Shown: positions 23,247 to 57,379, counted from the first letter of the stretch. The stretch: 64,000 bases of DNA from Phyllobates terribilis (GCF_046119375.1 NW_027362765.1:361956001-362020000); one strand, 5' to 3'. Made by a program: numbers and translations. The notes: a model not told the origin generated them from the sequence alone.

Positions 23247-23279
23247 TTACATTAATTGTATGACTCAATATTGAGCACA

Positions 23280-23905: not shown

Positions 23906-24095
23906 TGCACGGCGCCCCCCCCCCAGAGACAGCAGGGGGCCGCACGGCGCCATCTATACTCAGCAGGAGGATGCACGCAGTCACGCACGCACTTACGCAC
24001 ACAAACAAACATATACAGACATATACATAGACGCATAAACACATTTGAAACACAAAAATACATATAAACAGACATCACACAATGATATCTGCCTG

Positions 24096-28763: not shown

Positions 28764-31476
28764 TTAACAAGATAGGTAATTGTGAAGACCCGGGTTCTTC
28801 CATGGGCGTAATACTACTCAGACAACGCAGGGTGCAGGTAAAACAGTGTGGCAATACTTTATTGAACCACCAAACAGATAATAAACATATAGAACAGTCC
28901 CAGCAAATACCCAAAATGGTGCAAAATTACAGAGTCTCACACTTGGCCCGCCGGGAATAGAGCAGTGAGGTATGTGGCAGGTGACCTGATTGTCCCAACC
29001 TGGATTTCCTCATAACATCTCTGAGAGTTCAGTGATAGTCAATGAAGCAGATCTCTATTCCTCTTGATGGAGCCATGTGTCCTGGTTGCTGTGCTGAAGA
29101 TTCTCTCTCAGCTGTTTTTTGTGAAGTCTCTCTGATACAAAGGCATATGCCCCTTTAGTAGTTCACAATTGTCCTTTCAAGCACACATCCACAGGTCAAG
29201 GATAAGGGATGATATTATTCCGCAGGGCTTGAGTATTCACAGCTCATCCCCCAAAGTTCACTGGCAAACATCCTACAATAATATTTAACATATCTAGCAA
29301 ACATCCATTGTTCAAAGATCCTCAGTCGCTGTATTGAAAAACTATCACACGATACATTGTAGGAGCTGATATAAGATGTAAATAACAGCCATTCATCAAT
29401 TAACAAGTATCAACTCAAGTGATCAACATTCGGGTTTATACAAACAATAGTCTGTGTTGATCAACCAAAGAAGATCACAAATTCAAAAGTCAACAAAAAA
29501 ATAAAGGTGTATGGTTCCTGGCCTACTGATTTATACGTCTGGATAATTAAGTAGAAATGCTGTGTTGTCACAGTAATAAATGTTGGATCTTTGGGGGTTC
29601 GATCACTTGGACCATCACTGATCACAAGAACTCATGTGTCCTCTATGTGAATGGAGCTAAAGTGACCACCGCTTCATTCCCTTTCTATGGCAGCAGTATC
29701 GTTCACACAGCCCCATAAATGTGAACAGAGCGGCGATTTCACATTCAGGCTACCGCTTCATCCACAGGGGGCACATGAGACCCCCTTTTGTGTAATTAGT
29801 GAGAACTCCACCAATTATTTACCACTTATTCTGGGGATAGGTGATTTATGGTGGAACAGCCCCATGTAATAAAATTGCTCTGTACTCTTTAAATAATAGC
29901 GAAGTATCAAAATATAACTCCACCCGATGCTCGGGTCTCATTTCTATTGTCCATTTTAACATTTGGTTGATTTCCATATTATGGTCGCCCCATAGCAAGA
30001 TGTTCATTAGTATTGGCTGCAGGGAACTCAAGGATTTCTGACAAGGTGCCTGTCGTCTCCATGTATCATCTCCTGGAGAGTTCATCTACCGATGACGTCC
30101 CCATAATGGATGTTCTTCATGGATGAAATGTTAAAGTATTGAACCTACAATGATAATGGCATTATGGCCGGAGAACGGACGTGATCTGCTTCTATGTTTC
30201 ATCACATATTTTTGAAGGTCACCCTAAAGGGCGCAGCGAAGAGGAGAACCACAGGTGGAGCGCAGTACAAGAGGATTGTGATTATTCTCATCAAGGAAGA
30301 ATATTTTACAGTGGATTCAGTAACAATGAAATGTAACCTTAAAATTCTATCAAAACTATCAAAATATGTAAAAAAAAAAAAAGTTAAGAAAAATTCATGT
30401 TCCTGTGAAACAGATTTAATCAATTTAATAAGTTTCAAATTAAAAGACAAAAACATTTAATTAAAATTACTAATAATTACCATAGTGTGACCCATCCATG
30501 ATAACGTAAAATCATATTATTATATTGTATTATTCTTCACTTAATAAACATCTGAAATTCTCAAGCAAAATTTTTATCATTTCAAAATGACTTGTTATTG
30601 TTATTTTATATTGTTTTTATCTCTATTTTGGACATCATTTTGCAGCATTTGAAAGCTCAAGTTTTTATAAAACTACTTGGCTTTAATTATCGTGTTCTGA
30701 TCCTGTGTCTTATAGGCAAGGAGTGCGGCACTTATAAGTTTTGCTTTACAGCTTGCAAGCGCAGCTCTGAAGCTGACAGGATCGTGGCGTCAGAGAGCGC
30801 ACAGTTTGGACCAGCGGCTCAATCATGTCACTGGTCCGAACTGTCAGTCAATCAGGAGTGCACTATTCCCCAGTATGCAGGAAGCCCAGGAGGCAGAAGA
30901 GTGGTGCGCTCTTTAAAAATTATCCTGAGACAACCCCTTTAAGTGCATTGTCTTAGGTGCAGATGTAGCAGTTTTTAAGAGCTTATTGAGCATGCCCCAT
31001 AACCATATGCAAACTGTAGCGTCGGCGTCTCTGCCTCCTGCCCAACAGAGATGCCGATCTACTCACCCTGTCCTCATCGCAGTGTCTGATCGGGGTGCCC
31101 GCACAGCGCGTAGATCCCCAGTCTCTCTACTTAGGCGACGCGCGCGCTCCCCTCCTCTTAAAGGTGACGGGCCCGCTGTCCTATAAGTCCCCAGCCAATG
31201 GCTGGAGAACTGCTCCTGCTTAAGGCACCTCCTCCATAATGGAGGTGCCTGTACAAAGTTGTTGTTTGTGTGCTAACACTCTCTCCAGTCCTCAGGTTCC
31301 GTGCCCGCCCGCCTCTCTTTCAGCCATGCCCGCCTGCCTGTCTATCAGCCGTGCCCGCCTGCCTGTCTATCAGCCGTGCCTGCCTGCCTGTTTATCAGCC
31401 GTGCCCGCCGTGCTGAGGGGAGTTGCTTCTACTGTGGTAGTATAGAGCACCTAATCTGCTCCTGTGCGGTAAGACC

Positions 31477-31537
31477 GGGAAACTCCAGTGTCTAGGACCG
31501 CTCAGAGAGGTCGTCCTAGACAAAAGTCCTTCCTCTC
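31477..31537 (+). promoter_or_regulatory. -1 ribosomal frameshift signal (GGGAAAC plus pseudoknot) at the gag/pol junction
   Basis: GGGAAAC at 31477-31483, 6-nt spacer, stem 1 GTCTAGGAC/GTCCTAGAC, stem 2 GAGAGG/CCTCTC. The same signal is at about 49660-49720 on the minus strand. Confidence 0.8.
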
Positions 31538-31542
31538 CGCCC

Positions 31543-34500
31543 TTGACTCTGTCCGTGTCAGTTACTAGTGATAAGACCCGCTTCTTCGAGACTGCCTATC
31601 TGGATTCCGGAGCCGCTGGGAACCTCATTCAACAGGCTGTTGTGGAGCGATATCAGATTCCTACCATATGTCTGGCTGATCCTTTAGCGCTTTCCTCTGT
31701 GGATGGAAAGCTTCTCTCTGAGACCATCTTGTTTGTCATTGAGCCTGTAACTCTTCAGGCGGGAATGCTACATTTGGAGAGGATCTCCTTCGACGTGCTG
31801 TCCAGTCTCTCTCATCCCATCTTGCTTGGCCTGCCTTGGTTACAGAGACATGAGCCCGTCCTGAATTGGAGCTCGGATGAGGTGCTCCGTTGGGGTCAGG
31901 AATGTCATAAGTCCTGTCTGGTTCCGGTTCGTCCTGCTCTACCTCCGTCTACTCCAGCTAACCTACCCGGCCTGCCGGCACCCTACTGGTCATATGCGGA
32001 TGTCTTTGATAAAAAGGAGGCAGAGACATTACCACCTCATAGGTCGCATGATTGCCCCATCGACCTAATACCTGGTGCTTTACCTCCTCGCAGGCAAATC
32101 TACCCCTTGTCACTGGCCGAGACCCATGCTATGTCTGAGTTCATAGAAGAGAATCTTGCTAGGGGATTTATCCAGAAATCCACCTCTCCGGCTGGAGCAG
32201 GATTCTTCTTTGTCAAAAAGAAAGACAGCTCTCTTCGTCCATGTATCGACTATAGGGGCCTAAACCAGATTACCATCAAAAATAAGTACCCCCTGCCTCT
32301 CATCTCAGAGCTGTTTGACCGCCTAAAATGCGTGAAGATCTTCACTAAGCTCGATCTTCGTGGAGCGTACAATCTGGTCCGGATTCGCCAGGGAGACGAG
32401 TGGAAGATGGCATTCAACACTCGGGATGGGCACTACGAGTACCGAGTGATGCCCTTCGGTCTCTGTAATGCTCCAACTGTCTTCCAGGAGTTAGTGAACA
32501 ACATCTTCCGAGATCTCCTGTATTCCTGAGTGGTGGTGTATCTGGACGATATCTTGGTGTTCTCTCCTGATCTGCCCTCTCATCGGAGGGATGTTCGTCA
32601 GGTACTGCTGAGGCTTCCGAAGAATCGCCTGTATGCTAAGTACGAGAAATGCATCTTTAAGCAGACCTCCCTACCATTTTTGGGGTATATCATCTCTGAG
32701 ACCGGACTGCGGATGGATCCCGAGAAGGTGTCTGCCGTCTTAAAGTGGCCCCGACCTGAGGGGTTGAAGGCTATTCAGCGGTTTCTGGGATTCACTAACT
32801 ATTACCGCCTCTTCTTTCCTCATTTCTCCTCCCGGACTGCTCCCATCTCTGCTCTCACCCTAAAAGGGGAGAATCCCAGGGAGTGGTCTCCCGAGGCTGA
32901 GAAAGCCTTTGTCTCTCTTAAGCAAACCTTCTCCTCCGCTCCAGTGCTACATCGTTCTGATTGCAATAAACAGTTCTTCTTGGAGGTTGATGCCTCTTCC
33001 TCCGGGGCCGGAGCAGTGCTTACCCAGAAATCCTCGTCCGGGCGAATGGTGACCTGCGGCTTCTTCTCCAAACTCTTTTCTCCGTCCGAGCGCAATTACT
33101 CCATAGGAGATTGAGAACTGCTGGCCATCAAATTAGCGCTGGAGGAGTGGCGCTACTTGCTTGAAGGGGCCCTGCAATCGGTGGTCATCTACACTGGCAA
33201 CAAAAACCTCTCTTACTTGCAGACCGCCCAGACTAAAGGCCAGATGGTCTCTGTTCTTTGCTCGTTTCAGCTTTACTCTCCATTACTGCCCGGCAGGCAA
33301 GAATATTAAAGCAGACGCCCTATCCCGCTCTTTCCTATATATCGACCAAGAGGAGGAGCCTCTACACATCATTGACCCCTCCAGAATAATGTCTGTTGCT
33401 CCGTTTGACCTGTCTAATCTTCCTCCTGGTAAGACCTTTGTGGCGACTCAGGATCGGAAGAGGGTCTTACTCTGGGGTCATTCGTCCAAACTGGCTGGTC
33501 ATGCCGGCCAGAGTAAGACGCTTCTGCTTATTGCCCGACATTATTGGTGGCCCACCCTGCGCAAGGATGTTGCGGATTTTGTCGTGGCTTGTTCACCCTG
33601 TGCCCGTAACAAGTTACCTAGGCACCTCCCAGCTGGTCGTTTTCTTCTTCCTCTCCCCGTGCCTTCTGCTCCTTGGCAACACATTGCTATGGATTTCATC
33701 ACTGATCTTCCGGTATCTGCCGGTTCTACTGTCATATGGGTGGTCGCTGACCACTTCTCCAAGATGGCTCACTTCATTCCTTTGCCTGGTCTTCCATCCG
33801 CACCTGTGCTGGCTAAGGACTTCATCCGTCACATCTTTCGTCTCCATGGCTTACCCCTCCATTTTGTCTCAGATAGAGGAGTTCAGTTCACTTCTCTCTT
33901 TTGGAGAGCCATGTGCAAGTTGCTGGATGTCACTTTGGACTTTTCTTCAGTCTATCATCCTCAGTCCAATGGTCAGGTGGAACGTATTAATCAGATCCTC
34001 ACCAGTTTTCTTCAGCACTTTGTCAACGCTTACCATAGCAATTGGGTAGAACTTCTGCCTTGGGCCGAGTTTTCTTATAACAACCATGTGAGTGAGTCCT
34101 CTGCTAAGTCTCCGTTTTTTGTGGTTTACGGTCAACACGAGTCTCTCGTCAGTGACTTTTCGGTGATTTGGGAAGACACTAGATCTGCGCTTCTACAGTC
34201 CTCTGAACGGATGAAGAGACACACTGATAAGCGACATCTGGATCCGCCTCTTTTACGTCCGGGAGACAAGGTCTGGCTTTCCTCTAAGTATGTTTGCCTC
34301 AAGATGCCTTCAAGTTGGATCCTCGATTCATTGGTCCGTTTGAGATTCTGAGTCAAATTAATCCGGTGGCGTACAAGTTGAAACTTCCTGCCTCATTACG
34401 GATCCCCAACTCCTTCCATGTATCACTCCTCAAACCTGTTGTCCTCAATCCTTTCTCTGATGATCCGGGTACCGCTCCAGTTCCTGTCAGCGCTGAGGAC

Positions 34501-34670
34501 GTTTTTGAGGTAGAAAACATTCTGGCTACCAAGAGGGTAAGAGGAAAAACCTTTTTTCTTGTGGATAGGAAGGGGTTCGGTCCTGAGGAGAGGTCATGGG
34601 AGCCCAGGGAGAACATACAAGCTCTTTTTCTTCTTGAAAAGTTTTTTGTGGGCTTGAAGACGAGGGGGCG
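31543..34670 (+). pseudogene. pol: Disrupted pol (PR-RT-RH-IN-chromodomain), family B
   Basis: Motifs [35 protein letters not shown] and FLVDRKGFGPEERSWEP. In-frame stops and frameshifts. Confidence 0.93.
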
Positions 34671-36790
34671 TAAAGGGGGGGGTGCTGTAGCATTGGCGTG
34701 TCTGCCTCCTGCCCGACAGAGACGCCGATCTACTCACCACTGCGGCTCCGGTCCGGCGTTCCCCACTCCTTCCCCTGTCCTCAACGCAGCGTCTGACTGG
34801 GGTGCGCACACCGCGCGTAGATCTCCAGTCTCTGTACTTAGGGCACGTGCCGTCCTAAAAGTCCCCAACCAATGGCTGGAGGATTGCCCCTACTTAAGGC
34901 ACCTCCTCCATAATGAAGGTGCCTGTACATAGTTGTTGTTTGTGTGCTAACACTCTCTCCAGCCCTCAGGTTCCATGCTCGCCCGCCTGTCTATCAGCTG
35001 TGCCCGCCAGCCTGTCTATCAGCCGTGCCCGCCAGCCTGTCTATCAGCTGTGCCCGCCAGCTTGTCTATCAGCCGTGCCCACCTGCCTGTCTATCAACTG
35101 TGCCCGCCTGTCTGTCTATTAGCCATGCCCGTCTGCCTGCCTATCTCCCGTGCCCACCTGCTTGTCTACCCACGTCACCTGCCTGTCTACCAGCCGTGCT
35201 CATCAGCTGTGCCTGTTGGCTTGGGCCATCAGTCCCGTGGGAGTCGCCTGCTCTCACACGTGGTTGGTCCCAGAGTGGCACCTGGTTCACCTTCCCGGTC
35301 ACTTCTTGGTTCACGGAGTCGACTAAGCCGCCGTGTGGCCAGGGTCGGTCCGGGTAGGCACTTCATTACGCCCCTCTGGTCCCTCCTTGTATCACAGCAC
35401 AGAGGTTCCACCACCCGGATCCGTAACACAACCTAGGTAGTGTGACCACCTAAATGAGCTGCCACACAATGCCATGGGTGCAGGCACGCCACAATAAGGT
35501 ATCTTTTTGCTACATCTGCAACATGACTACATTGGTAGCATACACTTTAGAATATATTGCTAAGAATAAATACTACATTAGTAAAGTACTTTTTTCATGT
35601 TGCTGTATACTTTGTGTAAAAGCAGAGTTACCCGTTTAAAGTGTAAATATGGCTTCCCCATCACGGGTGCACGGTAAACCTATAGGTCTGTGTAATCACC
35701 CCATAGATACTTCTTGCACCATCAACTATTATCCAGTAGCAATGCCAACAAGTAGGAGGCACAAGTTGATACCACATGGGCACATAGCGGGCTGCGGGTG
35801 CTGTATGACCAAGTTGTTGGACCCAGATGATGTGGTTTTGCTCCGTATTGTCCAATCAAATGATAAAAAGTCAAAGTCGGAGATACAAAGTGGTTAATCT
35901 AAATACCAAGGCGATACATGTTGAGAGACCCAGAGGTCCAGAAGTGACGCGCTTCCATGTTAATTCATCTTATGGTCAGAACAGCTGTTCAGCCCATTGG
36001 AGACTCAGAAAATGGGCCAAATTGCATCTCTGCTCTTGCCAGCGATGTCCACGACTGGCACCAGAGGGTCCATAGAGGTCGCGAAACAGGAGAAGAGCCA
36101 AAGGTCTACATACGAATGTATCAAACGTTCCAATTAGATACAGAAATGCAGCGATAGAGTCCAAGTGATTCCACCTTAATGAAGACAGATTGTATTGTTC
36201 ATTATGAGACAGGATCTGCATATGCAGAGGGGCTGCCAGGCGGGTACGATGGAAGCATCGGGTCAACAAAGAGCAAAGACGGAAAACTGGGAAGAAGCAA
36301 AGATACTTAGGGACTTCACAGATTGGTAAAAACCACCAAGCAGCTGCTCTGTGCAGGATACAAGATACACAAATATTCTGACAACTGGATTTAAAAAAGT
36401 TTTATTTACTTATTTATTTTGCATTTTGAGGTTTTTTTTGATTTTTGAGTACGGAAATTTTAAGATTTTGTTTCTAACTTTTGCAATGTATAATACATTT
36501 TAGGAGAGTGGAACAATGTCCCTCCACGTTTGCTACTAGGTAAGGGACTTTTTAATAATTGTATTAATATTTTGTGACATTTTTATTAATATGTGCTTGA
36601 ATTCAGCAAGGAAATTATTCAATGCAAATGAAACTTCACCCTAAATCTCTGGGGTCTCTACAGACCCCAGTAAATAATAAATGTAGGGTGGAAAAAAATA
36701 ATGGCTAGTCACCTTGCCACTCAGCTGTCTCACCATCTCGTCCTATGCAGCGCACACCAGGACATCACACGTTACAATGTGCACTGTGGC

Positions 36791-39217: not shown

Positions 39218-40443
39218 AGACGATATGTATCCAGAAATGTCATCGTGTTTTACTGCCTTATTACACAGAGTTCAATAAATACGAGGGTTGCGTCTGGAGA
39301 GAAGCAAAGCTTTCTGCAAACATTAGCGATCAGAAGATGAAACCTTCTTCTCCCCCGATCTGCGAAACGCGTCGCCCATGGTCACATCAGGCGTTGGTTA
39401 GTTTATATTCCCCTGTAGCAAGGGAGGACGTCGTTACATGAGCCGAGGTCTCGGGTCTGTGACAGACGTGACTTTTAGTTCAGAAACAATATTTGTTTTG
39501 TTGTTTGATTTTCAGACTCCTTAAAAAGTTGCTCCTCCACGCACCCCCCCCCCGTGCCACAGATTGTGTCCGGTACTGCACTCCTGTTGACTTCTATGGA
39601 GCAGAGCTGCAATCCCAGACACAATCTAGGGACAGAGGTGACTGCCTCTCCTTGCCAAACAGTCTTGTTTTATATTCCTCCTATTAAAGGAGTTGTCTCG
39701 TCTTGTTAAATGGTTAACATTGCAGAAAAGCAAGCAGTTTCGTAATGTACACACGTGGTCAAAATTGTTGGTACCCCTCGTTTAATGAAAGAAAAACCCA
39801 CAACGGTCACAGAAATAACTTGAATCTGACAAAAGTAATAATAAATTAAAAATCTATGAAAATGAACAAATGAAAGTCAGACATTGCTTTTCTGCTTCCA
39901 CTGAATTAAAAAAAAAATTAAACCCATGAAATCGGCCTGGACAGAAATGATGGCACCCCTGAAAATAATGTGACAAAAGGGACATGTGAAATCAAGTTGT
40001 GTCCACTAATTATCATCACAGGTGTCTACAACCTTGTAATCAGTCAGTGGGCCTGTATATAGGGCTACAGATAGTCACTGTGCTGTTTGGTGACATGGTG
40101 TGCACCACACTCAACATGGACCAGAGGAAGTGTAGCACCCTGAGGATTCGGCTGCTACAGGGGTATTACACCTCAAGCCAGAGGTGTGGTATTCCACTCC
40201 CGGGTAAGGATGGAGTGTGGAACTGAGCTCAGTAGGCTGCATGCACTACATACATCCCATTTCCGGGGGACAGACCAATGGTACTCCCACTAGAGAAATG
40301 TGCAGGTACGACAGCGTCTGTCCCTGGCTGGAGTGGGAGGGGGGTGGAACATCCCAGTAGTGTAGGGGCAGATAGGGGGAGCAGTCTGGGTAATGCTAGG
40401 AGCTCATTGGGTGCTGGTCACCTGAGCTCACACATAGAGGGAG

Positions 40444-40450
40444 TATATAA
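40444..40450 (+). promoter_or_regulatory. LTR TATA box
   Basis: TATATAA in U3, repeated in the 3' LTR. An AGTAAA poly(A)-signal variant lies at 40963-40968 and also occurs in the related LTRs. Confidence 0.55.
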
Positions 40451-41331
40451 GGTGGGAACCATCTTAGAACAGGGTCTTTTGTAGAGGTTTGGTCAGACAA
40501 GCAGAGCAGCTCAGCCAGCTCCAAGGCCAAGAGAGTGAGAGAGAGGAGAAAAGAAGGACCCAGAGGGGGAGAAGAGGGAACTCCAAGAACCCAAAATTAG
40601 ACCAGAGGGTGAAGAGTTGGCACAAGGGTACCGGATCCCAAGCTGGTGGAGGGCACTAATCCTTAGCCAGAGACCGGAGGTCGTGGGCAGGATCTGCCAT
40701 GACCACCCACTAAATCCACCCGGAAGGCAAACCAAGAATAGGGTCAGGGAACCCAGAGACAAGGGTTTTACCAACAAGAGGCCCGAGGGAGCCGGACTTA
40801 GGTGGATCCCTGGTGGGGAAGGCCAGAGAGAAGGACAAGTCAGAAAGGGAGCTCAGGAACACGCTCCAGAATCACCTGGGGGTTGGCCGAGTCCAGGACC
40901 TGGTGGACGCAGCACGGCTCGGGTGGTCACTCAAGGCCGGAGTGACCAACACAAAAGCAGTAAGTAAAAACTCTGAACTGCACAGCCCGACTCTGAGTTT
41001 CATTACCATCCTCACTGCACCTCCACAACCACCATCCTCTGCAACTGACCCCCTGAGGCTATACCCCTCCCGTTGGGGGTTATACTACCTGAGCTGCACA
41101 CACACCACCAGCCTCAGCGGACCCTGCTGCAGCGGCGGCCGTAGTGACCGCAAATCAACGGGTGGCGTAGTCGACACTAAAGAACATCCAGTAACATCTG
41201 TAGGACTGCCACACACTGAGCTTGACACCCTGGGCACGGACCGGGTCACCGCCACTCGGAGACGACAACCCCCATCTGATCCGGCTCCGGGTATCCCCCA
41301 AACAACACTGGCCCAGGGGGCGCGTCAACTT

Positions 41332-41349
41332 TGGCGTAGTCGGCAGGAT
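41332..41349 (+). promoter_or_regulatory. Primer-binding site for tRNA-Ser
   Basis: TGGCGTAGTCGGCAGGAT, 4 nt after the 5' LTR, is complementary to the vertebrate tRNA-Ser(AGA/TGA) 3' end ATCCTGCCGACTACGCCA (sequence from memory). Confidence 0.9.
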
Positions 41350-41584
41350 AACGTGCCCGCAACAACCGGGTACTGCGTGCCTGAAGAAAAGTTCACCGTT
41401 ACCTTAAAAAGAAGTCTCCCGCCGGTTCCGGAGGGTCCCCGCCAACGGACCCCATCACAGGTCGTTTCCCGCCGGTTGCCCGCCATCTGCAGCTTTTTCC
41501 CGCCATCCACCGAGTTTCCCGCCACTGGGAGACGATTCCCGCCATTTCCAGAAGATTTCCCGCCTTGGAAGAGCGGACGCCATT

Positions 41585-43294
41585 ATGGGCGTGCCAGAGG
41601 GTGGCAAGAGGTCACCTCCCATCGTGGGCCAGGTCGAAGAATGGCGCCAAAAGCGGAAACCGCGCCCACCAACAGAGACTGTGATGCTGGAAGTGTCCAT
41701 CAGCGTGAGAGAACTGCCCCTGGAACTGACAATCACAAAGTCGCCCCGGGACCACCCTCAATGTGGGCGGAGACAGAACAAGAGAACGAAGATGGGTGTC
41801 GCCTGGAGGAGTCTGGAGAGAGCGCACCCGGAGACAAGAAGTCTGGAGAGGAGTCCAGAGAGAGCCTACCCGGAGATGGAGGGAGAGTCAGGCAGCACCG
41901 ACCCAGTGGTCAGGAGCCTGCTACAAGCCACAACCCCACTAGGCCTAGTGGAGGTCCTGGCACAGCTCCCCCGAGACCGGGAGTGTGCACAGACTGCGCT
42001 GGAGGGCCTCGCACGGAGGATGGCCCGGGTGCAGCGAGAGACGTTGGCGGAGTGGAGCCGAGAGATGGCCCAGCGGACCGAAACCCGTCAGCGGAGCACG
42101 CCACCCGAGACGAGGAGACAGACCGCCTCTGAGGATGGTGCAGGAGGACTCAAGGCCGGAGACGGCGCCGAGAAGGGAGCTGAACGAATGGAGGCAGGTA
42201 AAGGGGACGTCTCTACCCCGAGCCGGGAAACCGCGTGCCTGCCCCAGCTCCCCGTCGCAGAGCCCGAAATTCCCCCTGCCGTGCCCGTCGCTGCATCGTC
42301 ACCGCCGCAGACTAGGCCTCAACCGGAAACCGCGGCCGCGACCCCTGTGACGTCACGCGCTTCGACCCTGAGCGCGGCAAAGCAGGAAATACCATCGGCC
42401 TGGTCGCAAGGCCTAGTACACCCAGGCGCCGCCATTCCAACAGCGCCCCCTACCTCCGCGGAGCCACCAGCCTGGTCGCAGGGCCGAGTAACCACGGGCG
42501 CCGCCGTTCTTACGGTGCCCTTTTCCTTTAGCGTGCCCCAAGCCTGGTCGCAAGGCCTGGTCAACCCGGGCGCCGCTACCACCACAGCGCCCATAACACC
42601 CAAAGTACCGCACCTGGGTGAGGACCTGTTCGCCCAGCATACGTGCCCGGATGGGCAGCCCTTCATATGGCCCCAGGAGTACTACCAACTGGAACTCCAA
42701 AGGGCGAGGCCCCTGTGTGAGCCCCTGATTCCGGCTCCGAAGCCCGTCAGGAGGACCCAGCCCCCGCTAGAGGAGGCACAGTTTGAGTGGGACCCCATCG
42801 GAGGAGACCTCATGGGGTTCACTCAGGAGACTCGGGCGGCCGCAGCGGAGCGTGCAGAGTGCTGCCGCCAGCAGCTCGAGGTCTTCGAGAAGGAGCGGAG
42901 AGAGAGGCGGGTCCGGGAACAGCAAGCACAGATAAGGAGCGCGGAGCAGAAGAGCCGGACCTGGAGAGATCCCCGTGCAGCTCATGGTCCCCGTACCACC
43001 GGGACTGTGATTAAATTCAACCTGCAGCATGGGTGGGGCTTCATAAGAGACTATCATACCCCCGGCGACGTCTTTGTCACCCGCAGAGACGTAGAAAGCC
43101 ATCTGCCGGAGGGACACAGAGGTCGTGACCTGTATGTAGGGGACGAGGTCACCTTCACCCGGCACAAGTGTGCCAAAGGACCCTACGCCCTCCATGTACA
43201 TCGCCTGACGGAGGAGGAGCTGCGGTGTGAGGAGGAGCAGGAGGACCCGGACGGGTCTGAATCCAAAGAAGGAGCAGGAGGACGCCGTCGTTAA
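41585..43294 (+). CDS. 569-aa protein: helical N-terminus, Pro/Ala-rich linker with 3 AWSQG repeats, charged coiled coil, C-terminal cold-shock domain, acidic tail
   Basis: Intact ATG in a strong Kozak context (A at -3, G at +4) through to TAA. The CSD at about 42995-43207 reads GTVIKFN..HGWGFI (RNP1)..DVFVT (RNP2)..VGDEVTF..KGPYALHV. Confidence 0.88.
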   Translation: MGVPEGGKRSPPIVGQVEEWRQKRKPRPPTETVMLEVSISVRELPLELTITKSPRDHPQCGRRQNKRTKMGVAWRSLERAHPETRSLERSPERAYPEMEGESGSTDPVVRSLLQATTPLGLVEVLAQLPRDRECAQTALEGLARRMARVQRETLAEWSREMAQRTETRQRSTPPETRRQTASEDGAGGLKAGDGAEKGAERMEAGKGDVSTPSRETACLPQLPVAEPEIPPAVPVAASSPPQTRPQPETAAATPVTSRASTLSAAKQEIPSAWSQGLVHPGAAIPTAPPTSAEPPAWSQGRVTTGAAVLTVPFSFSVPQAWSQGLVNPGAATTTAPITPKVPHLGEDLFAQHTCPDGQPFIWPQEYYQLELQRARPLCEPLIPAPKPVRRTQPPLEEAQFEWDPIGGDLMGFTQETRAAAAERAECCRQQLEVFEKERRERRVREQQAQIRSAEQKSRTWRDPRAAHGPRTTGTVIKFNLQHGWGFIRDYHTPGDVFVTRRDVESHLPEGHRGRDLYVGDEVTFTRHKCAKGPYALHVHRLTEEELRCEEEQEDPDGSESKEGAGGRRR

Positions 43295-45707
43295 AGTACG
43301 GTAAAGAGACTGTAAATAGTTACCCATCGGGGTACAGTGAACTGTTGCTGCTTTAAATATGTCCCCGTTGGGACAAGAGTGAACTGTTAACCCGTGTGTC
43401 CCTATTCCAATTACCTGGCCGAGGACTGAGAGCGGCCATATTCCCCCTGTATATAGTTGCGCTTTCTAAGGCGCCCTCTACAGGTTTTATAGGAAAACCG
43501 TGTTTCTAAAGGAGACTGTCGCACTTTTCCCGGTCACAAGTTGCACCGTGGCCGGAGGAGCAAGAGTGTTTACAAGGATGTTATTTATGAAAAGTTTTAT
43601 ATGAAAAGTTTTATTGCTGATAATATATGTGATGTTTTATATGTTTATGTTTATGAAAAAAAATTGTATGTTTTGGATGTTTTTTATATCTTACAGCCCG
43701 AGGACGTGCTGTGATTTACCAGGGGGGAATGTAGCACCCTGAGGATTCGGCTGCTACAGGGGTATTACACCTCAAGCCAGAGGTGTGGTATTCCACTCCC
43801 GGGTAAGGATGGAGTGTGGAACTGAGCTCAGTAGGCTGCATGCACTACATACATCCCATTTCCGGGGGACAGACCAATGGTACTCCCACTAGAGAAATGT
43901 GCAGGTACGACAGCGTCTGTCCCTGGCTGGAGTGGGAGGGGGGTGGAACATCCCAGTAGTGTAGGGGCAGATAGGGGGAGCAGTCTGGGTAATGCTAGGA
44001 GCTCATTGGGTGCTGGTCACCTGAGCTCACACATAGAGGGAGTATATAAGGTGGGAACCATCTTAGAACAGGGTCTTTTGTAGAGGTTTGGTCAGACAAG
44101 CAGAGCAGCTCAGCCAGCTCCAAGGCCAAGAGAGTGAGAGAGAGGAGAAAAGAAGGACCCAGAGGGGGAGAAGAGGGAACTCCAAGAACCCAAAATTAGA
44201 CCAGAGGGTGAAGAGTTGGCACAAGGGTACTGGATCCCAAGCTGGTGGAGGGCACTAATCCTTAGCTAGAGACCGGAGGTCGTGGGCAGGATCTGCCACG
44301 ACCACCCACTAAATCCACCCGGAAGGCAAACCAAGAATAGGGTCAGGGAACCCAGAGACAAGGGTTTTACCAACAAGAGGCCCGAGGGAGCCGGACTTAG
44401 GTGGATCCCTGGTGGGGAAGGCCAGAGAGAAGGACAAGTCAGAAAGGGAGCTCAGGAACACGCTCCAGAATCACCTGGGGGTTGGCCGAGTCCAGGACCT
44501 GGTGGACGCAGCACGGCTCGGGTGGTCACTCAAGGCCGGAGTGACCAACACAAAAGCAGTAAGTAAAAACCCTGAACTGCACAGCCCGACTCTGAGTTTC
44601 ATTACCATCCTCACTGCACCTCCACAACCACCATCCTCTGCAACTGACCCCCTGAGGCTATACCCCTCCCGTTGGGGGTTATACTACCTGAGCTGCACAC
44701 ACACCACCAGCCTCAGCGGACCCTGCTGCAGCGGCGGCCGTAGTGACTGCAAATCAACGGGTGGCGTAGTCGACACTAAAGAACATCCAGTAACATCTGT
44801 AGGACTGCCACACACTGAGCTTGACACCCTGGGCACGGACCGGGTCACCGCCACTCGGAGACTACAACCCCCATCTGATCCGGCTCCGGGTATCCCCCAA
44901 ACAACACTGGCCCAGGGGGCGCGTCAGAAGCAAAAGAAAGAGTTGTCTCAGGAGATTAGAAAGTGTTACGGGTCCGGGTGGTGGAACCTCTGTGCTTCGG
45001 TGCAAGGAGGGACCAAAGGGGTGTAACTAAGTGCCTACCCGGCTTGACCCAGGTCACACGGCGGCTCAGTCGACTCCGTGAACCAGGGAGGGACCGGGCA
45101 GGTGAACCAGGTGCCACTCTGGGACCTACCTTGTGTGAGAGCAGGTGACTCCCACGGGTCAGATGGCAGGAACTGATCGGTACAGCGGATGAGCACGGCA
45201 GGAAGGCAGACGGGTGGTCCGGGTAGATCAGCAGGCAGGTACGGCAGATAGCCAGACAGGTGCTCTGGGTAGACAGGCTGGCGGGCACGACAGGTAACTG
45301 GCAGGTGCTCCAAGTAGGCAGGCTGGTGGGCACGGCAGGTAACTGGCAAGTTGGCAGGCTGGACTGTTAGACAGATTGGCGGGCTGGACTGACAGGCAGA
45401 GGGACCTGAGGGCTGAGGAAAGTGTTAGCACACAAAACAACCTTGTACAGGCACCTCCATTTTGCCTTATAAAGGAGAAGTCCTCCGGCCATTGGCTGGG
45501 GACTCTTTAGGATGGCGCGCGTGGCCCCTTTAAGACAGGGGGAGCGCACGCGTGCCCTAAGCACAGTGCCCGGGAAGCTGTGCGCGGTGCGTGCCACAGC
45601 AGCAGGGGAGCAGGAAGACACTGGACCAGGACCGCGGCGATGAGGGGGAACGGCGTCTCTGCCCGGCAGAAGGCAGAGACGCTGATGCTACAGTACCCCC
45701 CCCCCCC

Positions 45708-48700
45708 TTAACGCCCTCTCTTCATTAGTCCCGTGAGGAATTTTTTAAGAAGATAAGGGGCATGAATGTTCTCCATCGGTTTCCAAGACCTCTCCTCCAG
45801 GCCAAACCCCTTCCAATCAACAAGAAAGAAGGTCTTTCCTCTTACCCTCTTGGTGGCCAAAATGTTTTCTACCTCAAAGACGTCCTCAGCGGAGACTGGA
45901 GCTGAGGTGGTGCCTGGATTGTCAGAGAAAGAATTAAGGACAACTGGTTTGAGGAGGGATACATGAAAGGAGTTGGGAATCCGTAAGGTGACTGGGAGTT
46001 TCAGCTTGTAAGCCACGGGATTGATTTGGATCAGAACCTCGAACGGACCGATGAACCGTGGACCCAACTTATAAGAAGGTATCTTGAGATGGACATATTT
46101 GAAGGAAAGCCAGACCTTGTCTCCCGGACGGAATTGAGGCGGATCCAGACGTCTCTTATCAGCATGTCTCTTCATCAGCTCAGAGGACTGAAGAAGTGCA
46201 GATCTAGTGTCTTCCCAAATAGCCAAAAATTTGCTGACAAGAGACTCTGCAGCAGGATTGTCCACTGAAGAGGAGACGGGAAACGGAATCTGGGGGTGTC
46301 GACCGAAGACCACAAAAAACGGCGATTTAGAAGAAGACTCGCTCTCATGGTTGTTATAGGAGAACTCGGCCCAGGGGAGGAGCTCAACCCAATCGTTATG
46401 GTGAGCGTTGACAAACTGCCGAAGAAAGCTGGTAAGGATCTGGTTGATACGTTCCTCTTGACCATAGGACTGAAGATGATAAGCAGAAGAGAAATCCAAA
46501 GAGACATCCAGCAGCTTGCATGTAGCTCTCCAGAAGCGCGAAGTGAACTGAACCCCGCGATCAGACACAATGTGGAGGGGTAGGCCGTGAAGACGGAAGA
46601 TGTGATGGATGAAGTCCTTAGCCAGCACAGATGCAGACGGAAGACCAGGCAGAGGGATGAAGTGGGCCATCTTAGAAAAGCGATCAGCGACCACCCAAAT
46701 GACAGTACAACCGGCAGAAACAGGGAGTTCCGTGATGAAGACCATTGCAATGTGCTGCCACGGAGCGGAAGGCACGGGAAGAGGAAGGAGACAGCCGGAT
46801 GAAAGGTGCCTGGGAACCTTGTTATGGGCACAAGAGGAACAAGCCGCGACAAAATCCGCAACATCCTTGCGCAGGGAAGGCCACCAGTAATGTCGGGCGA
46901 TGAGCAGAAAGGTCTTTCTCTGGCCAGCATGACCGGCTAGTTTGGATGAATGGCCCCAGAGTAGAACCTTCTTTCGATCCGGAACCGCTACAAAGGTCTT
47001 ACTGAGTGGAAGATGAGACAGGTCAAACGAAGCAACAGTCATTACTTTGGAGGGGTCAATGATATATAGAGGCTCCTCCTCTTGGTCGGAAGACAGGAAT
47101 AAGCGGGATAGCGGTGAAGCAGAATTGGGCAAAGAATAGTGACCACCTGGCCTGATGCGGATTTAGTCTTTGGGTGTTCTGCAAATAAGCAAGGTTTTTG
47201 TGGTCAGTGCAGATGACCACCGGGTGCAGAGTCCTCACCAGCAAGTAGCACCACTCTTCCAGCGCTAATTTGATGGCCAGCAGCTCACGATCTCCTATGG
47301 AATAGTGTAATACTATTGTAGGAACTCGAGGATTCTGATAGCGTGGGGCAATGAACAAGCAGAGATGGGTTTCTTTAGTGCAAATAGTGTATTTGTGCAA
47401 CAGCAATAACACCCAAAAACAATATACAGATAACCCGTAGTGACATACAATGAAATAAGTCCAGCAATATTAAGTCTTTGAAACCTATATAGCAAAGTCG
47501 GCAATGTTCTTACGATGGAGTCTTCACACAAATGCTATCAAAAGGAAAGTCTGACACACTGGTGATGTGGCTTGATTCAAACACTGTTGGTGTAGTAAAA
47601 GTCAGATCCAGGTATGCAGTAGCCACAGGGAAGTCCAAGAACAAGTTCACAAGTTAATCCTAGATGTGGCGTAGATTCAGGGAAGTCCAGAAACAAGTTC
47701 ACATTTAAGTAATATTCCAGTAAATAGTTCCAGCAGCCCTCACCGGAGGGAGTGAACGAAGGGTTAAACAACACAGTTCAGAAACACAGTTCTTACGGGT
47801 AGAGTGAGCCAAGGGTTAAATTCCAAAGTCAACAGGTTAATGATAACACAGTGAGTGTAGCTTACATACACAGAGAAAGTCCAGAGCCACAGGCTGCTGC
47901 TGAGAAACATGTGAAGATTAACCTGGGAGATAATAGTAGGACAAGGCAGCTGGACTGAAGGGAAACGGAAGCAGAATACTCCAGCACCTGGGCTGGGTTT
48001 TAAACAAACGAACAGAAAGTAGGGCATACAAAAACAGCAAACTCCATCTTAACAAAAGGCAAAATCATTCACAAGGTGACCTAGAAAACCCGGAATACTG
48101 ACAAATAGTTGCGCTCGGACGAGGAGAAGAGCTTGGAGAAGAAGCTGCAGGTTACCATTCTTCTGGATGAGGATTTCTGGGTGAGCACCGCTCCGGCTCC
48201 GGAGGAGGATGCATCAACCTCCAGGAAGAACTGCTTGTTGCAATCTGGACGGAGCAGCACAGGAGTGGAGGAGAAGGCTTGTTTAAGGGAGACGAAGGCC
48301 TCCTCTGCTTCGGAAGTCCATTCCCTGGGATTTGCTCCTTTACGGGTGAGCGCGGAGATGGGAGAAGTCCGGGAGGAGAAATGAGGAATGAAGAGGCGGT
48401 AATAGTTCATGAAGCCCAGGAATTACTGAATCTCCTTCAACCCCTCTGGTCGGGACCACTTTAAGATGGCAGACACCTTCTCGGGATCCATCCGCAGACC
48501 AGTCTCGAAGATAATATAGCCCAGGAACGGTAGGGAGGTCTGCTCAAAGAGGCATTTCTCGAATTTAGCGCATAGGCGATTCTTCTGGAGCCTTAGCAGA
48601 ACCTGACGAACACCCCTCCTGTGTGAGGGCAGATCCGGAGATAAAACCAAGATATCGTCCAGGTACACCACCACGCAAGAATACAGGAGATCACGGAAGA

Positions 48701-49700
48701 TGTCATTAACCAGCTCCTGGAAGACGGCTGGAGCATTACAGAGACCAAAGGGCATCACGCGGTATTCGTAGTGACTGTCCCGGATGTTGAATGCCATTTT
48801 CCACTCGTCTCCCTGACGGATCCGGACCAAATTGAACGCCCCACGAAGATCAAGCTTGGTGAAGATCTTCGCGCCTTTAAGGCGGTCAAACAGCTCCGAG
48901 ATGAGAGGCAGGGGGTACCTATTTTTGATGGTAATCTGGTTAAGGCCCCTGTAATCGATACAGGGACTTAGAGAGCTGTCTTTCTTCTTGACGAAGAAGA
49001 ATCCTGCTCCAGCCGGAGAAGTGGATTTCTGGATAAATCCACTAGCAAGATTCTCTGCTATGTACTCAGACATGGCCCGGGTCTCAACCAGCGACAAGGG
49101 GTAGATTCGCCTGCGGGGAGGAGAAGCACCAGGTACCAGGTCGATGGAGCAATAAGACGGCCTATGAGGTGGTAGTGTCTCCGCTTCCTTTTTGTCAAAG
49201 TCATCCGCATAGGACCAGTAGGGTGCCGGCAGACCAGGTAGATCAGCCGGAGAAGACGGGGGTCGAGCAGGACGAACCGGAACCAGACAGGACTCATGGC
49301 ATTCCTGACCCCAACTGAGCACTTCACCAGATCTCCAATTCAGGACGGGCTTATGTCTTTGCAACCAGGGTAGACCAAGCAAGAGGGAGTGAGAGAGACC
49401 AGACAGCATATAAAAGGAGATCTTCTCCGAGTGCTGCATTCCCACCTGAATGGTTACAGGTTCTGTGACGAGCAAGATGGTCTCCGAAAAAGCCTCCCAT
49501 TCATGGAGGCAACTGCCAACGGTTCAGCCAGACGTACGGTAGGAATCTGATACCGCTCTTCCACAGCCTGTTGAATGAGATTCTGAGCGGCTCCGGAATC
49601 CAGATGGGCAGTCTCGAAGAAGCGGGTCTCATAGACATAGACAGACAGAGTCAAGGACAGAGAAGATTCACTCTTGCCTAGGACGACCTCTCCAAGCGGT
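45708..49700 (-). pseudogene. pol: Disrupted pol, family B
   Basis: Motifs HLDSGAAQN, YLDDILVLS, FLEVDASS, the integrase core and chromodomain FLVDWKGFGLEERSW. Frameshifts, and a solo LTR inserted in RNase H. Confidence 0.92.
47306..48103. mobile_element. Solo LTR of an unrelated family
   Basis: 798 bp, TG..CA, 5-bp TSD AATAG (47301-47305, 48104-48108). It splits the RNase [13 protein letters not shown] motif. Confidence 0.88.
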
Positions 49701-49701
49701 C

Positions 49702-50637
49702 CTAGACACTGGAGTTTCCCAGCCTCACCGGGCAGGAACGGATCAGATGCTCTATACTGCCACAGTAGAAGCAACTCCCCTTGGCTTGGCGCGTCTCTAG
49801 GTGAGACTTGACCATCTTGGTTTGGTCAATTTGCATAGGCTCAGGCAAACATACCTGGGGAATTTCTGGTTGCAAGGCTGGCCTTTGGAATGTTGGAGCG
49901 AGATGCGGAAATCTTCTCTCCCGTGTAGTCTCCTTGCCACGTTCCAGAAAACGGATGTCAATCCGGGTAGCTAAAGACACCAGGTGGTCCAGGGTGGAAA
50001 GGATGTCACGACCGGCTAGCTCATCCATGATCCGTCCGGAAAGACCCTCCCAAAAGGTGGACACCAGAGCCTCATTGTTCCAGGCAAGTTCAGATGCGAG
50101 GGTTCGGAAACGTATGGCATACTGGCCCACAGTGAGACTCCCTTGGCGGAGACGGAGAAGTGAGGAGGCAGTAGAAGATTTTCGTCCGGGCTCATCGAAG
50201 ACCTTCCGGAAGGCAGCGAGGAAAGCCAGAAGATCGGACACCAGGGGATCCCCTCTTTCCCACTGAGGGTTAAGCCATGCCAATGCCTCCCCGGTAAGGT
50301 GAGACATGATGAACGCCACCTTGGCCCAGTCGGAGGTGAATTGGTGTGCTAGGAGTTCAAAGTGCAGCGTGCACTGATTTATGAAGCCCCGACATAAGAC
50401 GGGGTCACCACCAAAATGTGGAGGCGCAGAGAGCCGGGGTCCAAAGCCGGGTGCCACAGCGCCACTGGGTTGAGGTGCCGCCGGAGCGGGTGCCGCTCGG
50501 CTAGAGACGGACACAGACGGGGTGGACAGCGTGTTCAGGCGGGAGTTGACAGTCCGCAGATAGGACAGGATAGTTTCCTGTTGGGATCTCTGGTACAGGT
50601 CTGAGAGCGAAGGAGCCTGGGGGCCACCGGGTTCTAT
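49702..50637 (-). pseudogene. gag: PEG10/RTL-like gag, family B; start codon apparently mutated (ATA)
   Basis: [70 protein letters not shown], in one open frame. Confidence 0.88.
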
Positions 50638-52243
50638 GGGCTGTGCAAACTGTTATGGATCCGGGTGGTGGAACCTCTGTGCTTCGGTGCAAGGAGGGAC
50701 CAGAGGGGCGTAACTAAGTGCCTACCTGGCCTCGCCCAGGTCACACGGCGGCTTAGTCAACTCCGTAAACCAGGGAGAGACCGGGCAGGTGAACCAGGTG
50801 CCACTCTGGGACGACCTTGTGTTAGAGCAGGTGACTCCCACGGGTCAGATGACAGGAACTGACCAGTACAGCGGATAAGCACGGCAGGAAGGCAGACGGG
50901 TGGTGCGGGTAGATCAGCTGGCAGGTACGGCAGATAGCCAGACAGGTGCTCCGGGTAGACAGGCTGGCGGGCATGGCAGGTAACTGACAGATGCTCCAGG
51001 TAGGCAGGCTGGCAGACACGTCAGGTTACTGCCAGGTGCTCCAGGTAGGCAGGCTGGCGGACACGACAGGTAACTGGCAGGTGCTCCAGGTAGACTGGCT
51101 GGCGGACACGGCAGGTTACTGGCAAGTGCTCCAGGTAGGCTGGCTGGCGGACACGGCAGGTAACTGGCAAGCAAGCTGGCAGGCTGGACTGTTAGACAGA
51201 CTGGCGGGCTGGACTGTTAGACAGACTGGCGGGCTGGACTGTTAGACAGACTGGCAGGCTGGACTGACAGGCAGCAGGACCTGAGGGCTGAGGAAAGTAT
51301 TAGCACACAAAACAACAACCTTGCACAGGCACCTCCTTTTTGGAGGAGGTGCCTTATACAGTAGAAGTCCTCCGGCCATTGGCCGGGGACTCTTTAGGAT
51401 GGCGCGCGGCCTCTTTAAGAGGGGGGGACCGTGCGCACGCCCTAAGCACAGTGCCCGGTAAGCTGTGCGTGGTGCGCGCCACAGCAACAGGGGAGCAGGA
51501 AGACACTGGACCAGGACCGCGGCGGTGAGGGGAACGGCGTCTCTGCCCAGCAGAAGGCAGAGACGCCGATGCTACAGTACCCCCCCTTTACGCCCCCTCT
51601 TCTTTAGGCCCGTGAGAAATTTTTTAAGAACATGAGGGGCATGAATGTTCTCCCTGGGTTCCCAAGACCTCTCCTCTGGGCCAAACCCCTTCCAATCAAC
51701 AAGAAAGAAAGTCTTTCCTCCTACCCTCTGGGTGGCCAAAATGTTTTCTACCTCAAAGGCGTCCTCAGCGGAGACTGGAGCTGGTGGTACCTGGATCATC
51801 AGAGAAGGAATTAAGGACAACTGGTTTGATGAGGGATACATGAAAGGAGATGGGAATCCGTAAGGTGACCGGGAGTTTCAGCTTGTAAGCCACGGGATTG
51901 ATTTGGTTCAGAACCTCGAACGGACCGATGAACCGCAGACCCAACTTATAAGCACAGTGCCCGGGAAGCTGCGCACGGTGCGCGCCGCAGCAGCAGGGGG
52001 AGCAGGAGGACGCCGGACCAGGACCGCGGCGGTGAGGGGATCAACGTCTCTGCCCGGCAGGAGGCAGAGACGCCGATGCTACAGAAAGAAAATTATAGAC
52101 AAGCATGTTAAAGGTAAAGGTTATAAGACCATCTCCAAGCAGCTTGATGTTCCTGTGACTACAGTTGCACATATTATTCAGAAATTTAAGATCCATGGAA
52201 CTGTAGCCAACCTCCCTGGACGTGTCCGCAGACAAATTTTTGA

Positions 52244-55601: not shown

Positions 55602-57379
55602 GACTCTAGATCTGGTGAATAAATCAAAATGTCATCCAAATACACAACCACATTCTTACCAATCAAAGGTCTCAGGATGTCATTAATAAGATTCTGAAAA
55701 AATGCTGGTGCATTGGTAAGACCAAAAGGCATCACCAGATTCTCAAAATGAGTGTTAAAAGCAGTTTTCCATTCATCACCCTCCTTCACACGTAGCAAAT
55801 TGTATGCCCCCCGGAGATCAATTTTGTAGAACCACTTGGCTCCCACTAACTGGTTAAACAAGTCAGGAATTAACAGCAATGGGTAGGAATTGCGTACGGT
55901 AATCTTATTAATTTCTCGAAAATCCAGACATGGACGTAAACCGCCGTCCTTTTTTTTAACAAAGAAGAATCCAACTGCACCAGGCGACTTAGAAGGTCTA
56001 ATGTGACCAGCAGCCAGGCTAGTCTGTATGTACTCCTCCAAGGCCTTTCTTTCAGGGATAGTCAGATTAAACAAGCGACTCTTGAGAAGAGTAGCTCCAG
56101 GAACAAACTCAATGGCGCAATCATAATCCCTATGAGGAGGTAAAACTTGCGACTCCTCCTCCGAAAAAACCCTCCAAAAATCTTGAATAGGTACCGGTAA
56201 TTCCCCTTTTTCCACAGCCGCAATGCGACCATTACAACATTTATCATAGCACTTCGGACTCCAAGACTTAATCACATTAGTAGACAGCAGCAGTCTTGTG
56301 AGTAATACATTTCAAAGGTGTGTTATCTGTAATGACCGGAGGTCCGAGAGAGATCCAGTGAGTCACAAACTGAGACAGAGGCAGAAATAAACAACACTTT
56401 CTTTACTAAAACAGGGATTAGACTAAAATTCAGTATTGAATGAATCAGTCTCAGGTTCTGCCTGGGACACTGTCTCTACTAAATACACACAATCAGTAAA
56501 AGCTGAAATCAATGTGCCAATCTCAAGGTTTCCAGCTTATGTGAATTATTCTAGTGATCTGGAACAATTTTATCTAAACACTGTGTCAGTCTAGTGAGGG
56601 CGGTATATGGGGACCCCCTGAGATGGCACACTGCATACAATCTTACCACTATGAGCAATAATAATGCATAAAACTATATCAATTGCTCTTATTATCAGGA
56701 TATCCGGATATCTTAAAGTTATGGTACCGTTAACCTCAGATGCAGTCTATCACAGGCCTGTGAATCACGCTGGCTGCAGCTAGTCCCGGAAAACTTTGGC
56801 GCCTAAACAAAAACAAAGTTCACAAAACAGCAAAAATTCCTTGTCTTGTCGGCCGATGCCGAGCCCACACGCCGGGGACTTTAGTCCTGTTGCCTCAGAT
56901 TAAGGTCTGGGAAGATCTCTTCACAAAGTCTTGTCAATATCCTCTCAGTGGAAATAGCACCAGAAATCTTCTTTCCTCCCGAAGTCTCTCACTGTTATCC
57001 AGTACTCCAGCCGCGTGCTCAGTCACAGAAATGGATTCCTCAGTCCCTTCATCACTCCACACGTGACTCCTTCAGCACAAAGTCTATAATCCACTCAGCA
57101 TGGACCTCCACAAAACTCCACAGAGCCACACAGCTTCCCCAGCTCAGCACTTGTCCTTAAACAGAGAAAGGGGTAAACAAACTCCACACAGAAGAGTGTA
57201 AAGACAGCGTCTTATTGCAGCTCCTTTTTACAGACTTCCTGTCTAGACTCACACATCAGACACTCTAAGAATACACACAGTTTCTAGCACTGCCCCTCCT
57301 CTGAGCCCAGCCAGGCAAAAGTCACAGGGTCCTAGTGCTCTCCTGCTGTTATCACATTTCACACTCTCACATGCCACCC

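Follow-up and report, generated by a model that had tools for sequence, protein, structure and literature searches.

A recently transposed LTR element of Phyllobates terribilis lacks gag and pol and carries an intact cold-shock-domain open reading frame under purifying selection

Non-autonomous long terminal repeat (LTR) elements are usually regarded as non-coding parasites of autonomous partners. Described examples, i.e., LARD and TRIM elements of plants, ETn and VL30 of mouse, and MaLR of mammals, have LTRs, a primer-binding site (PBS), a polypurine tract (PPT) and a target-site duplication (TSD), lack reverse transcriptase and integrase, and are mobilised in trans. Here we analyze an element with the same set of parts, located at positions 40131-44926 of a 64,000-nucleotide stretch of the genome of the frog Phyllobates terribilis (GCF_046119375.1 NW_027362765.1:361956001-362020000; this whole stretch is called the window, and positions are counted from its first letter). 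Whereas the interiors of LARD, TRIM, ETn, VL30 and MaLR elements are non-coding or decayed, the family to which this element belongs keeps a selected, non-gag open reading frame (ORF) of 569-617 amino acids, which ends in a cold-shock domain (CSD). Members of the family occur in more than one frog species, the copy in the window has transposed recently with its ORF intact, and the ORF is under purifying selection.

Two further kinds of described system are close to this element. Replication-defective transducing retroviruses have the same order of LTR, PBS, leader, single non-viral ORF, PPT and LTR, and are also helper-dependent, but each arises from a single capture of a recognisable host gene and does not persist for long, whereas the CSD element has no identifiable donor and its association of ORF and LTR is old, with 37-40% protein identity between frog genera. 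With the ORF1p protein of LINE-1 and with retroviral nucleocapsid, the proposed shared logic is that of an element-encoded protein acting on its own RNA. The order of coiled coil and RRM in ORF1p is resembled by the long helix followed by a binding domain in the CSD protein, but a CSD/OB barrel stands in place of the RRM or the CCHC knuckle, and the element belongs to a different class.

Our analysis confirmed that a complete LTR retroelement, with LTRs, TSD, PBS and PPT all present, occupies this interval, as the first-pass annotation of the window had claimed (Table 1). The two 1197-bp LTRs align without gaps and differ at 6 positions (99.5% identity), with 4 of the 6 mismatches located in CpG dinucleotides and 3 of these being CG/TG differences. 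Both LTRs start with TG and end with CA, and these repeats, together with the 4-bp TSD, the tRNA-complementary PBS and the PPT, are the structural features of an LTR retrotransposon or retrovirus-like element. Autonomous elements of the Ty3/gypsy, Ty1/copia, BEL/Pao and Retroviridae groups encode gag and pol, and this element encodes neither. The PBS sequence is the same as the first 18 nucleotides of an antisense oligonucleotide template for human tRNA-Ser (PMC3299991), and because of this match we take it to pair with the 3′ terminus of tRNA-Ser, CCA included. Neither the window nor the other loci examined contain a tRNA-Ser gene with which the PBS could be compared directly. An AATAAA motif is absent from the LTR.

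The ORF nearly fills the 2.4-kb interior, and its ATG has an A at -3 and a G at +4. The stop-free run in the interior is 628 codons long, compared with a maximum of 330 in 2000 shuffles of the interior. The annotation had described a single uninterrupted ORF of 569 residues ending in a CSD, and had predicted that a Pfam search would return PF00313; both points hold, with the CSD family matching residues 472-539 at 32.9 bits (cut-off 27) over profile positions 2-64 of 66. No other Pfam domain was found in the ORF at E≤1. The statement that the interior lacks a protease, reverse transcriptase, integrase and CCHC knuckle likewise stood: in addition to the Pfam result, no C-x2-C-x4-H-x4-C motif is present in any interior frame, and tblastn with the gag, protease, reverse transcriptase and integrase ORFs of the Ty3/gypsy copies in the window gave no match in the element at E≤1. 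A gag or capsid origin of the N-terminus was considered and rejected, since Pfam at E≤1, a PDB search with residues 1-460, an AlphaFold2 model searched with Foldseek against PDB and BFVD, the CCHC expression and tblastn were all negative; the BFVD search returned CSD/S1-type viral proteins only, and no capsid or nucleocapsid. The protein has neither the N-terminal and C-terminal capsid domain fold nor the CCHC knuckles of retroviral Gag and nucleocapsid proteins.

The AlphaFold2 model, built from a 10-sequence family alignment, is mostly disordered, with a mean predicted local distance difference test score (pLDDT) of 55, and has three confidently predicted parts: the N-terminal helical module and the long charged helix (Table 1), and a five-stranded barrel at residues 470-540 (strands 470-479, 484-489, 495-499, 521-529 and 532-540; pLDDT 81-95). 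Foldseek placed this barrel on CspA of the PDB (1mjc; TM 0.88, E 1e-7), followed by the CSDs of YBX1/2, CRHSP-24, LIN28 and Unr. The same barrel, with an RNP1-like GWGFI and a VFV core, is shared with YBX1/2/3, LIN28, CARHSP1/CSDC2, CSDE1 and bacterial Csp (Foldseek TM 0.63-0.90), but in sequence searches of the PDB the ORF gave similarly low scores of 22-26 bits with the Y-box CSDs and with bacterial Csp, and a still lower score with LIN28. It also differs from the vertebrate proteins in having no A/P-rich domain, no basic/aromatic Y-box tail and no CCHC pair, and in a family-specific motif, VFVxRRDVExHLxxGHxxRD. Orphan anuran, dinoflagellate and microbial CSDs match ahead of the Y-box, LIN28 and CARHSP1 proteins, placing the ORF product outside these families, and we found no orthology to any named host gene. 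Alignment to YB-1 demonstrated that the GWGFI and VFV cores are retained, while W65 is replaced by K and H87 by T; we take these to be two of the five Y-box CSD positions that stack on bases. An RR pair that follows RNP2 (VFV) is invariant throughout the family. Judging from its domain and fold, the protein likely binds nucleic acid with a specificity that may differ from that of Y-box proteins. An RNA-chaperone activity, as suggested earlier, may be read from domain and fold, with the qualification that two canonical Y-box base-stacking positions are replaced.

Outside the barrel, an N-terminal helical module is predicted with pLDDT ~54 in its first helices and ~70-87 from residue 121, and has no Pfam or PDB match; residues 172-380 have pLDDT below 50 and are predicted to be disordered. 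The long charged helix directly before the CSD is modelled with pLDDT 93-98 up to about residue 450 and ~70 at its end, and may form either a coiled coil or one isolated (single) alpha-helix. Helix and CSD are kept together in four relatives, i.e., P0001 and P0054 of P. terribilis, P0002 of Ranitomeya variabilis and P0003 of Anomaloglossus baeobatrachus.

The closest protein, P0001, is annotated as an "uncharacterized protein" of P. terribilis, is 73-75% identical to the ORF product, and was the sole close match in ~5.8 billion clusters. Examination of its locus (L001) demonstrated a second element of the same kind, with 1245-bp LTRs at 7941-9185 and 11787-13031 that are 100% identical, its own 4-bp TSD (ACAA), the same PBS and PPT region, and an intact ORF of 617 residues that is open from the same ATG as the ORF in the window. 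The flanks of L001 share nothing with the window, i.e., the two sites are non-orthologous. The elements are ~80% identical at the nucleotide level (82% in the LTR, 89% in the leader and 78% in the 3′ untranslated region, the leader being the best-conserved non-coding part), and all five ORF indels between them are in frame, whereas the LTR and 3′ untranslated region carry non-triplet indels. A separate insertion of 41 residues, made up of repeated "SSTGPLARSL" units, is present near residue 98 of the L001 ORF. With two mobile-looking copies that have unrelated flanks and LTR pairs of 99.5% and 100% identity, the elements form a non-autonomous family, and a second copy at another site, with identical LTRs, its own TSD and an intact ORF, refutes a one-off capture of host sequence.

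Comparison of the ORFs in the window and in L001 by the method of Nei and Gojobori (NG86) gave a ratio of nonsynonymous to synonymous substitution (dN/dS) of 0.256 for the whole ORF, 0.44 for residues 1-340, 0.10 for residues 341-545, 0.12 for residues 341-460 and 0.06 for the CSD. The bootstrap 95% confidence interval of whole-ORF pN/pS was 0.28-0.42, and 0 of 2000 replicates reached 1. Because dN/dS is below 1, the ORF indels are in frame and both LTR pairs are near-identical, we conclude that the protein is under purifying selection in two element lineages, each of which transposed very recently. The first-pass annotation had listed four outcomes that would tell against its proposal, of which three were examined, namely no CSD match, an ORF broken in other copies with dN/dS near 1, and a one-off capture; none of these applied.

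The conserved C-terminal half of the ORF has a different history from its surroundings. Identity at third codon positions between the window ORF and L001 is ~70% at residues 41-360 and ~50% at residues 361-520 (window 42665-43144), and dS is ~1.3 at residues 361-520 compared with 0.4-0.5 in the N-terminal half, a pattern suggesting either a mosaic, recombinant history or unusual synonymous turnover. The LTR, leader and 3′ untranslated region remain 78-89% identical despite the ~50% third-position identity at residues 361-520, and the contrast therefore points to a much deeper coalescence of the C-terminal half. This would be explained by recombination between old CSD-bearing subfamilies, and would imply long-term selection on the protein.

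Our exhaustive phmmer search of 1.84 billion representatives found specific relatives of the helix-plus-CSD region in anurans only: R. variabilis (P0002 and P0042), R. imitator (P0004 and P0055), A. baeobatrachus (P0003 and P0007), Bufo bufo (P0038; assembly identity from PMC10539516) and two Logan contigs. The remaining matches were dinoflagellate multi-CSD proteins or microbial Csp. The anuran family shares the signature G-V--F----GWGFI------VFV-RRDVE-HL--GH--RDLY-GD-V-FTRH, and the N-terminal part of the P0054 model, which represents a second P. terribilis subfamily, is 43% identical to the window ORF in the N-terminal helix module and 56% in the helix-plus-CSD region. The gene models of P0054, P0055 and P0004 join a CSD-ORF fragment to a Harbinger/PIF DDE transposase or a MADF domain, and are probably chimeric predictions across nested repeats; P0004 ends in GGRRR, the same C-terminus as the window ORF. 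Beyond the P. terribilis protein, word-indexed protein searches yielded only two chimeric models, and metagenome scans with peptide and LTR/PPT patterns returned no further copies. One Logan contig (L003) provided no context. Among viral contigs, the degenerate family pattern matched only an IMG/VR phage contig (L004, 5380-5802), and this match was rejected as a generic Csp, i.e., a small phage CSD protein with VFVHRRDI, encoded just upstream of a terminase large subunit.

Comparison at the DNA level covers three loci: the element in the window, L001, and a R. variabilis locus (L002, 9521-14112) in which a CSD ORF of 382 residues, annotated as LOC143808358, is intact and 37-40% identical at the protein level. 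The ORF of L002 is followed by a 3′ untranslated region, a PPT and an LTR that starts with TGTGGCACCCCAGGG and has a U5-side block ~66-67% identical to positions 879-1038 of the window LTR. Its 5′ LTR remnant is truncated at both ends and has lost 206 bp internally, with an ACC microhomology at the deletion; the ATG lies 4 nucleotides after this remnant and no PBS is present. Since the PBS is absent and the 5′ LTR truncated, L002, an old relative, is immobile. Its 3′ untranslated region also contains an 840-bp perfect-hairpin insertion (foldback-like, or resembling a miniature inverted-repeat transposable element) at 11329-12168. These loci indicate that the association of the ORF with the LTR is old and diversified. 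No host donor gene is visible: nothing but orphan CSD ORFs of anurans is closely related to the ORF, and an LTR accompanies it at each of the three loci whose DNA could be read. The annotation's proposal of a non-autonomous family with a captured gene therefore stands with respect to a family that maintains the ORF (L001 and L002), and lacks a host donor gene with respect to capture.

The LTR has distant relatives within the window, at 24854-26130 and 63696-64000, which share with it the PPT region and the start TGTGGC.CCCCTGAGGGTTCG. The LTR at 24854-26130, complete and within a stretch of related sequence at 24815-26130, is preceded by a homologous PPT region and has a conserved U5-side block in common with the CSD element; this copy resembles an internally deleted relic, and that at 63696-64000 is cut by the end of the window. 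Further copies or fragments of this distant family lie at 22170-22260 and 24558-24638. No CSD ORF or recognisable coding capacity was found in the distant relatives in the window, no retroelement domain is encoded by the ORFs that precede the related LTR at 24854, and tblastn found no second CSD ORF in the window. The motif GT[AG]AGTAAA is present in both LTRs of the CSD element (at 40960-40968 and 44559-44567), at ~8808 in L001, and at window position 25748 in the distant LTR family; its sequence can be read in two ways, as a 5′ splice-donor core or else as a poly(A) signal of the form AGTAAA.

Between PBS and ORF, the leader contains five exact TTCCCGCC motifs, mostly in the form TTTCCCGCC, spaced by 31, 19, 20 and 21 nucleotides. 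Only 7 matches to TTCCCGCC exist in the whole 64 kb, 5 of them in the leader, against a mean of 1.5 expected by chance, and all five recur, almost identically spaced, in the leader of L001 (9322-9419). We regard the array as a candidate site for binding of the CSD protein; it occupies the position at which a retroviral packaging signal would lie. On DNA, the motif resembles an E2F site. Folding of the leader compared with shuffled sequences gave z = -1.0, i.e., no sign of special structure, and Rfam gave nothing meaningful.

We propose that the element is a recent insertion from a dendrobatoid frog family of non-autonomous LTR elements that keeps its own RNA-binding protein, is mobilised in trans, and whose protein acts on its own RNA, a reading to which we give about an even chance. 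Because the family has no gag, protease, reverse transcriptase or integrase of its own, reverse transcription and integration must be supplied by a helper, which would be an autonomous LTR element or endogenous retrovirus providing reverse transcriptase and integrase. The protein, whose N-terminal region is disordered apart from a short helical module and is followed by a long charged helix and a C-terminal CSD, would bind single-stranded RNA through the CSD and an adjacent basic helix. It would prefer the transcript that encodes it, which it would coat, stabilise or chaperone, with the TTCCCGCC array as the candidate recognition site, and RNA coated in this way would more readily enter the particles of the helper. 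By analogy, the element may supply for itself a function like that of nucleocapsid or of LINE ORF1p. More broadly, and with somewhat less confidence, a long-lived dendrobatoid, perhaps wider hyloid, LTR lineage may have exchanged gag-pol for a CSD protein needed in cis, e.g., via the TTCCCGCC array and helper particles. Several observations weigh against this proposal. The replacements of W65 by K and H87 by T may alter nucleic-acid binding; the immobile L002 keeps an intact ORF, which would fit a host-useful gene too; and the history of the ORF is mosaic, so that a single dN/dS figure is a simplification. The folding result is neutral, suiting a single-strand binding array while giving no support for a structured psi.

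A different origin would be that the element is the reverse-transcribed, spliced subgenomic RNA of a complex endogenous retrovirus or LTR element, with the CSD ORF as a 3′ accessory gene (Rev/Rex/Rec-like) and the element now a defective satellite of its parent. Reverse transcription of a spliced retroviral mRNA yields the form LTR-PBS-ORF-PPT-LTR, and a retained PBS, absent gag-pol, one 3′ ORF and a PPT are the expected product. The conserved GT[AG]AGTAAA contains a perfect donor core in the LTRs of the window element, L001 and the distant family, but retroviral donors lie downstream of the PBS, while this candidate is within the LTR and may equally be a poly(A) signal. The related LTRs without a CSD ORF in the window demonstrate that the LTR lineage is wider than the CSD carriers; yet no autonomous or full-length gag-pol relative with these LTRs was found in the window, L001 or L002. 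In addition, the 257 nucleotides from the LTR end to the ATG contain 6 gap columns relative to L001 and no visible junction. On balance, we consider a spliced-RNA origin unlikely.

Selection on the ORF could also have a beneficiary other than the element. If the ORF were a transduced gene of a lineage-specific anuran CSD family, it might be kept for the benefit of the host, e.g., as an LTR-driven germline RNA-binding protein, or be carried as neutral cargo. Consistent with this, CSD relatives are annotated as single-copy-looking genes in Ranitomeya, Anomaloglossus and B. bufo, some relatives differ in domain order (e.g., P0038 has an N-terminal CSD), and the R. variabilis copy has kept its ORF intact without a PBS and with a truncated 5′ LTR. 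However, neutral cargo would not give a dN/dS of 0.06-0.26 between recently transposed, non-orthologous lineages, host-level selection would have difficulty acting on an ORF that is mobile and multi-copy, we found no donor locus with introns, only generic CSDs occur outside anurans, and each of the three readable loci is associated with an LTR, making a host gene distinctly unlikely. The protein might also serve counter-defence and not packaging, shielding the RNA of the element or its helper from cleavage by Piwi-interacting RNA (piRNA) or small interfering RNA (siRNA), or from CpG-directed restriction. CSD proteins of the FRGY2/YBX2 type coat and mask mRNAs, and the RNA of the element is CpG-rich, the leader reaching an observed/expected ratio of 1.1 and the ORF one of 0.75, compared with 0.55 for the whole window. 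The far-diverged synonymous sites in the conserved C-terminal half could mean escape from sequence-based silencing, but this synonymous excess is more simply explained by recombination between old subfamilies, and a role confined to counter-defence appears to us highly improbable.

Table 1. Features of the CSD-encoding LTR element (window coordinates; L001 is the related P. terribilis element)
Feature	Position	Strand	Basis or remark
TSD, left copy, GAAG	40127-40130	+	Identical to 44927-44930
5′ LTR, 1197 bp, TG..CA	40131-41327	+	Gapless alignment with 3′ LTR
TATATAA in 5′ LTR	40444-40450	+	Motif search
GTAAGTAAA in 5′ LTR, conserved; possible splice donor or AGTAAA poly(A) signal	40960-40968	+	
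PBS, 18 nt, TGGCGTAGTCGGCAGGAT	41332-41349	+	4 nt downstream of 5′ LTR; identical in L001
Leader array, five TTCCCGCC motifs	41466-41564	+	Motif search
ORF, 569 residues, ATG start	41585-43294	+	
N-terminal helical module, residues 107-170	41903-42094	+	AlphaFold2 helices 107-114, 118-126, 132-170
Three ~72-nt tandem repeats, proline/alanine-rich "AWSQG" units ("..AWSQG..PGAA..")	42392-42592	+	Self-matches; in the predicted disordered middle
Long charged alpha-helix, residues 414-461, directly before CSD	42824-42967	+	AlphaFold2
Cold-shock domain, residues 472-539	42998-43201	+	Pfam, PDB sequence matches to Csp/YB-1, AlphaFold2 barrel
3′ untranslated interior, AT-rich	43295-43720	+	78% identical to L001, non-triplet indels
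PPT, AGGGGGGAA, 9-nt purine run	43721-43729	+	Abuts 3′ LTR; also in L001 and before the related LTR at window 24854
3′ LTR, 1197 bp	43730-44926	+	Alignment with 5′ LTR
TSD, right copy, GAAG	44927-44930	+	Identical to left copy

Apart from the CSD element and its LTR relatives, the window contains retroelements of the Ty3/gypsy type, with pol split over several ORFs. The annotation had stated that every other retroelement ORF in the window is broken, and the split pol is broadly in line with this. The CSD element is inserted ~30 bp outside the LTR of a neighbouring gypsy copy. Two Ty3/gypsy copies, at 12061-17441 and 56328-63517, are fairly young, the LTRs of the first (424 bp) being 99.3% and those of the second (1045 bp) 97.9% identical, and those at 31130-35429 (+) and 44960-51952 (-) belong to one chromodomain-bearing Ty3/gypsy family. 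Tandem minisatellite-like blocks are present at 4664-5260, 6785-7826 and 23273-23977, the last of which lies inside the relic of a related LTR element and contains a spurious ORF of 207 residues.

Our search of the full-text literature, with Repbase and Dfam outside its scope, did not turn up any account of an LTR element that encodes a CSD, in agreement with the annotator's impression that the architecture had not been described, and a paper on the transposable elements of the dyeing poison frog does not mention one. If our proposal is true, a coding "satellite" strategy of this kind, with a CSD in the role of nucleocapsid or ORF1p, would be undescribed for LTR elements. A family that has no gag-pol, and that retains a single, unrelated RNA-binding gene under strong purifying selection in copies that transposed recently, implies that the protein benefits the element. 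This raises the questions of how a parasite of a parasite gains packaging or survival of its RNA, whether CSD proteins can replace chaperones of the nucleocapsid or ORF1p type, and by what route retroelements acquire new genes and retain them. Through this family, a set of frog gene models annotated as "uncharacterized protein" is flagged as borne by transposable elements, and the family also has a bearing on the expansion of poison frog genomes that is driven by such elements.

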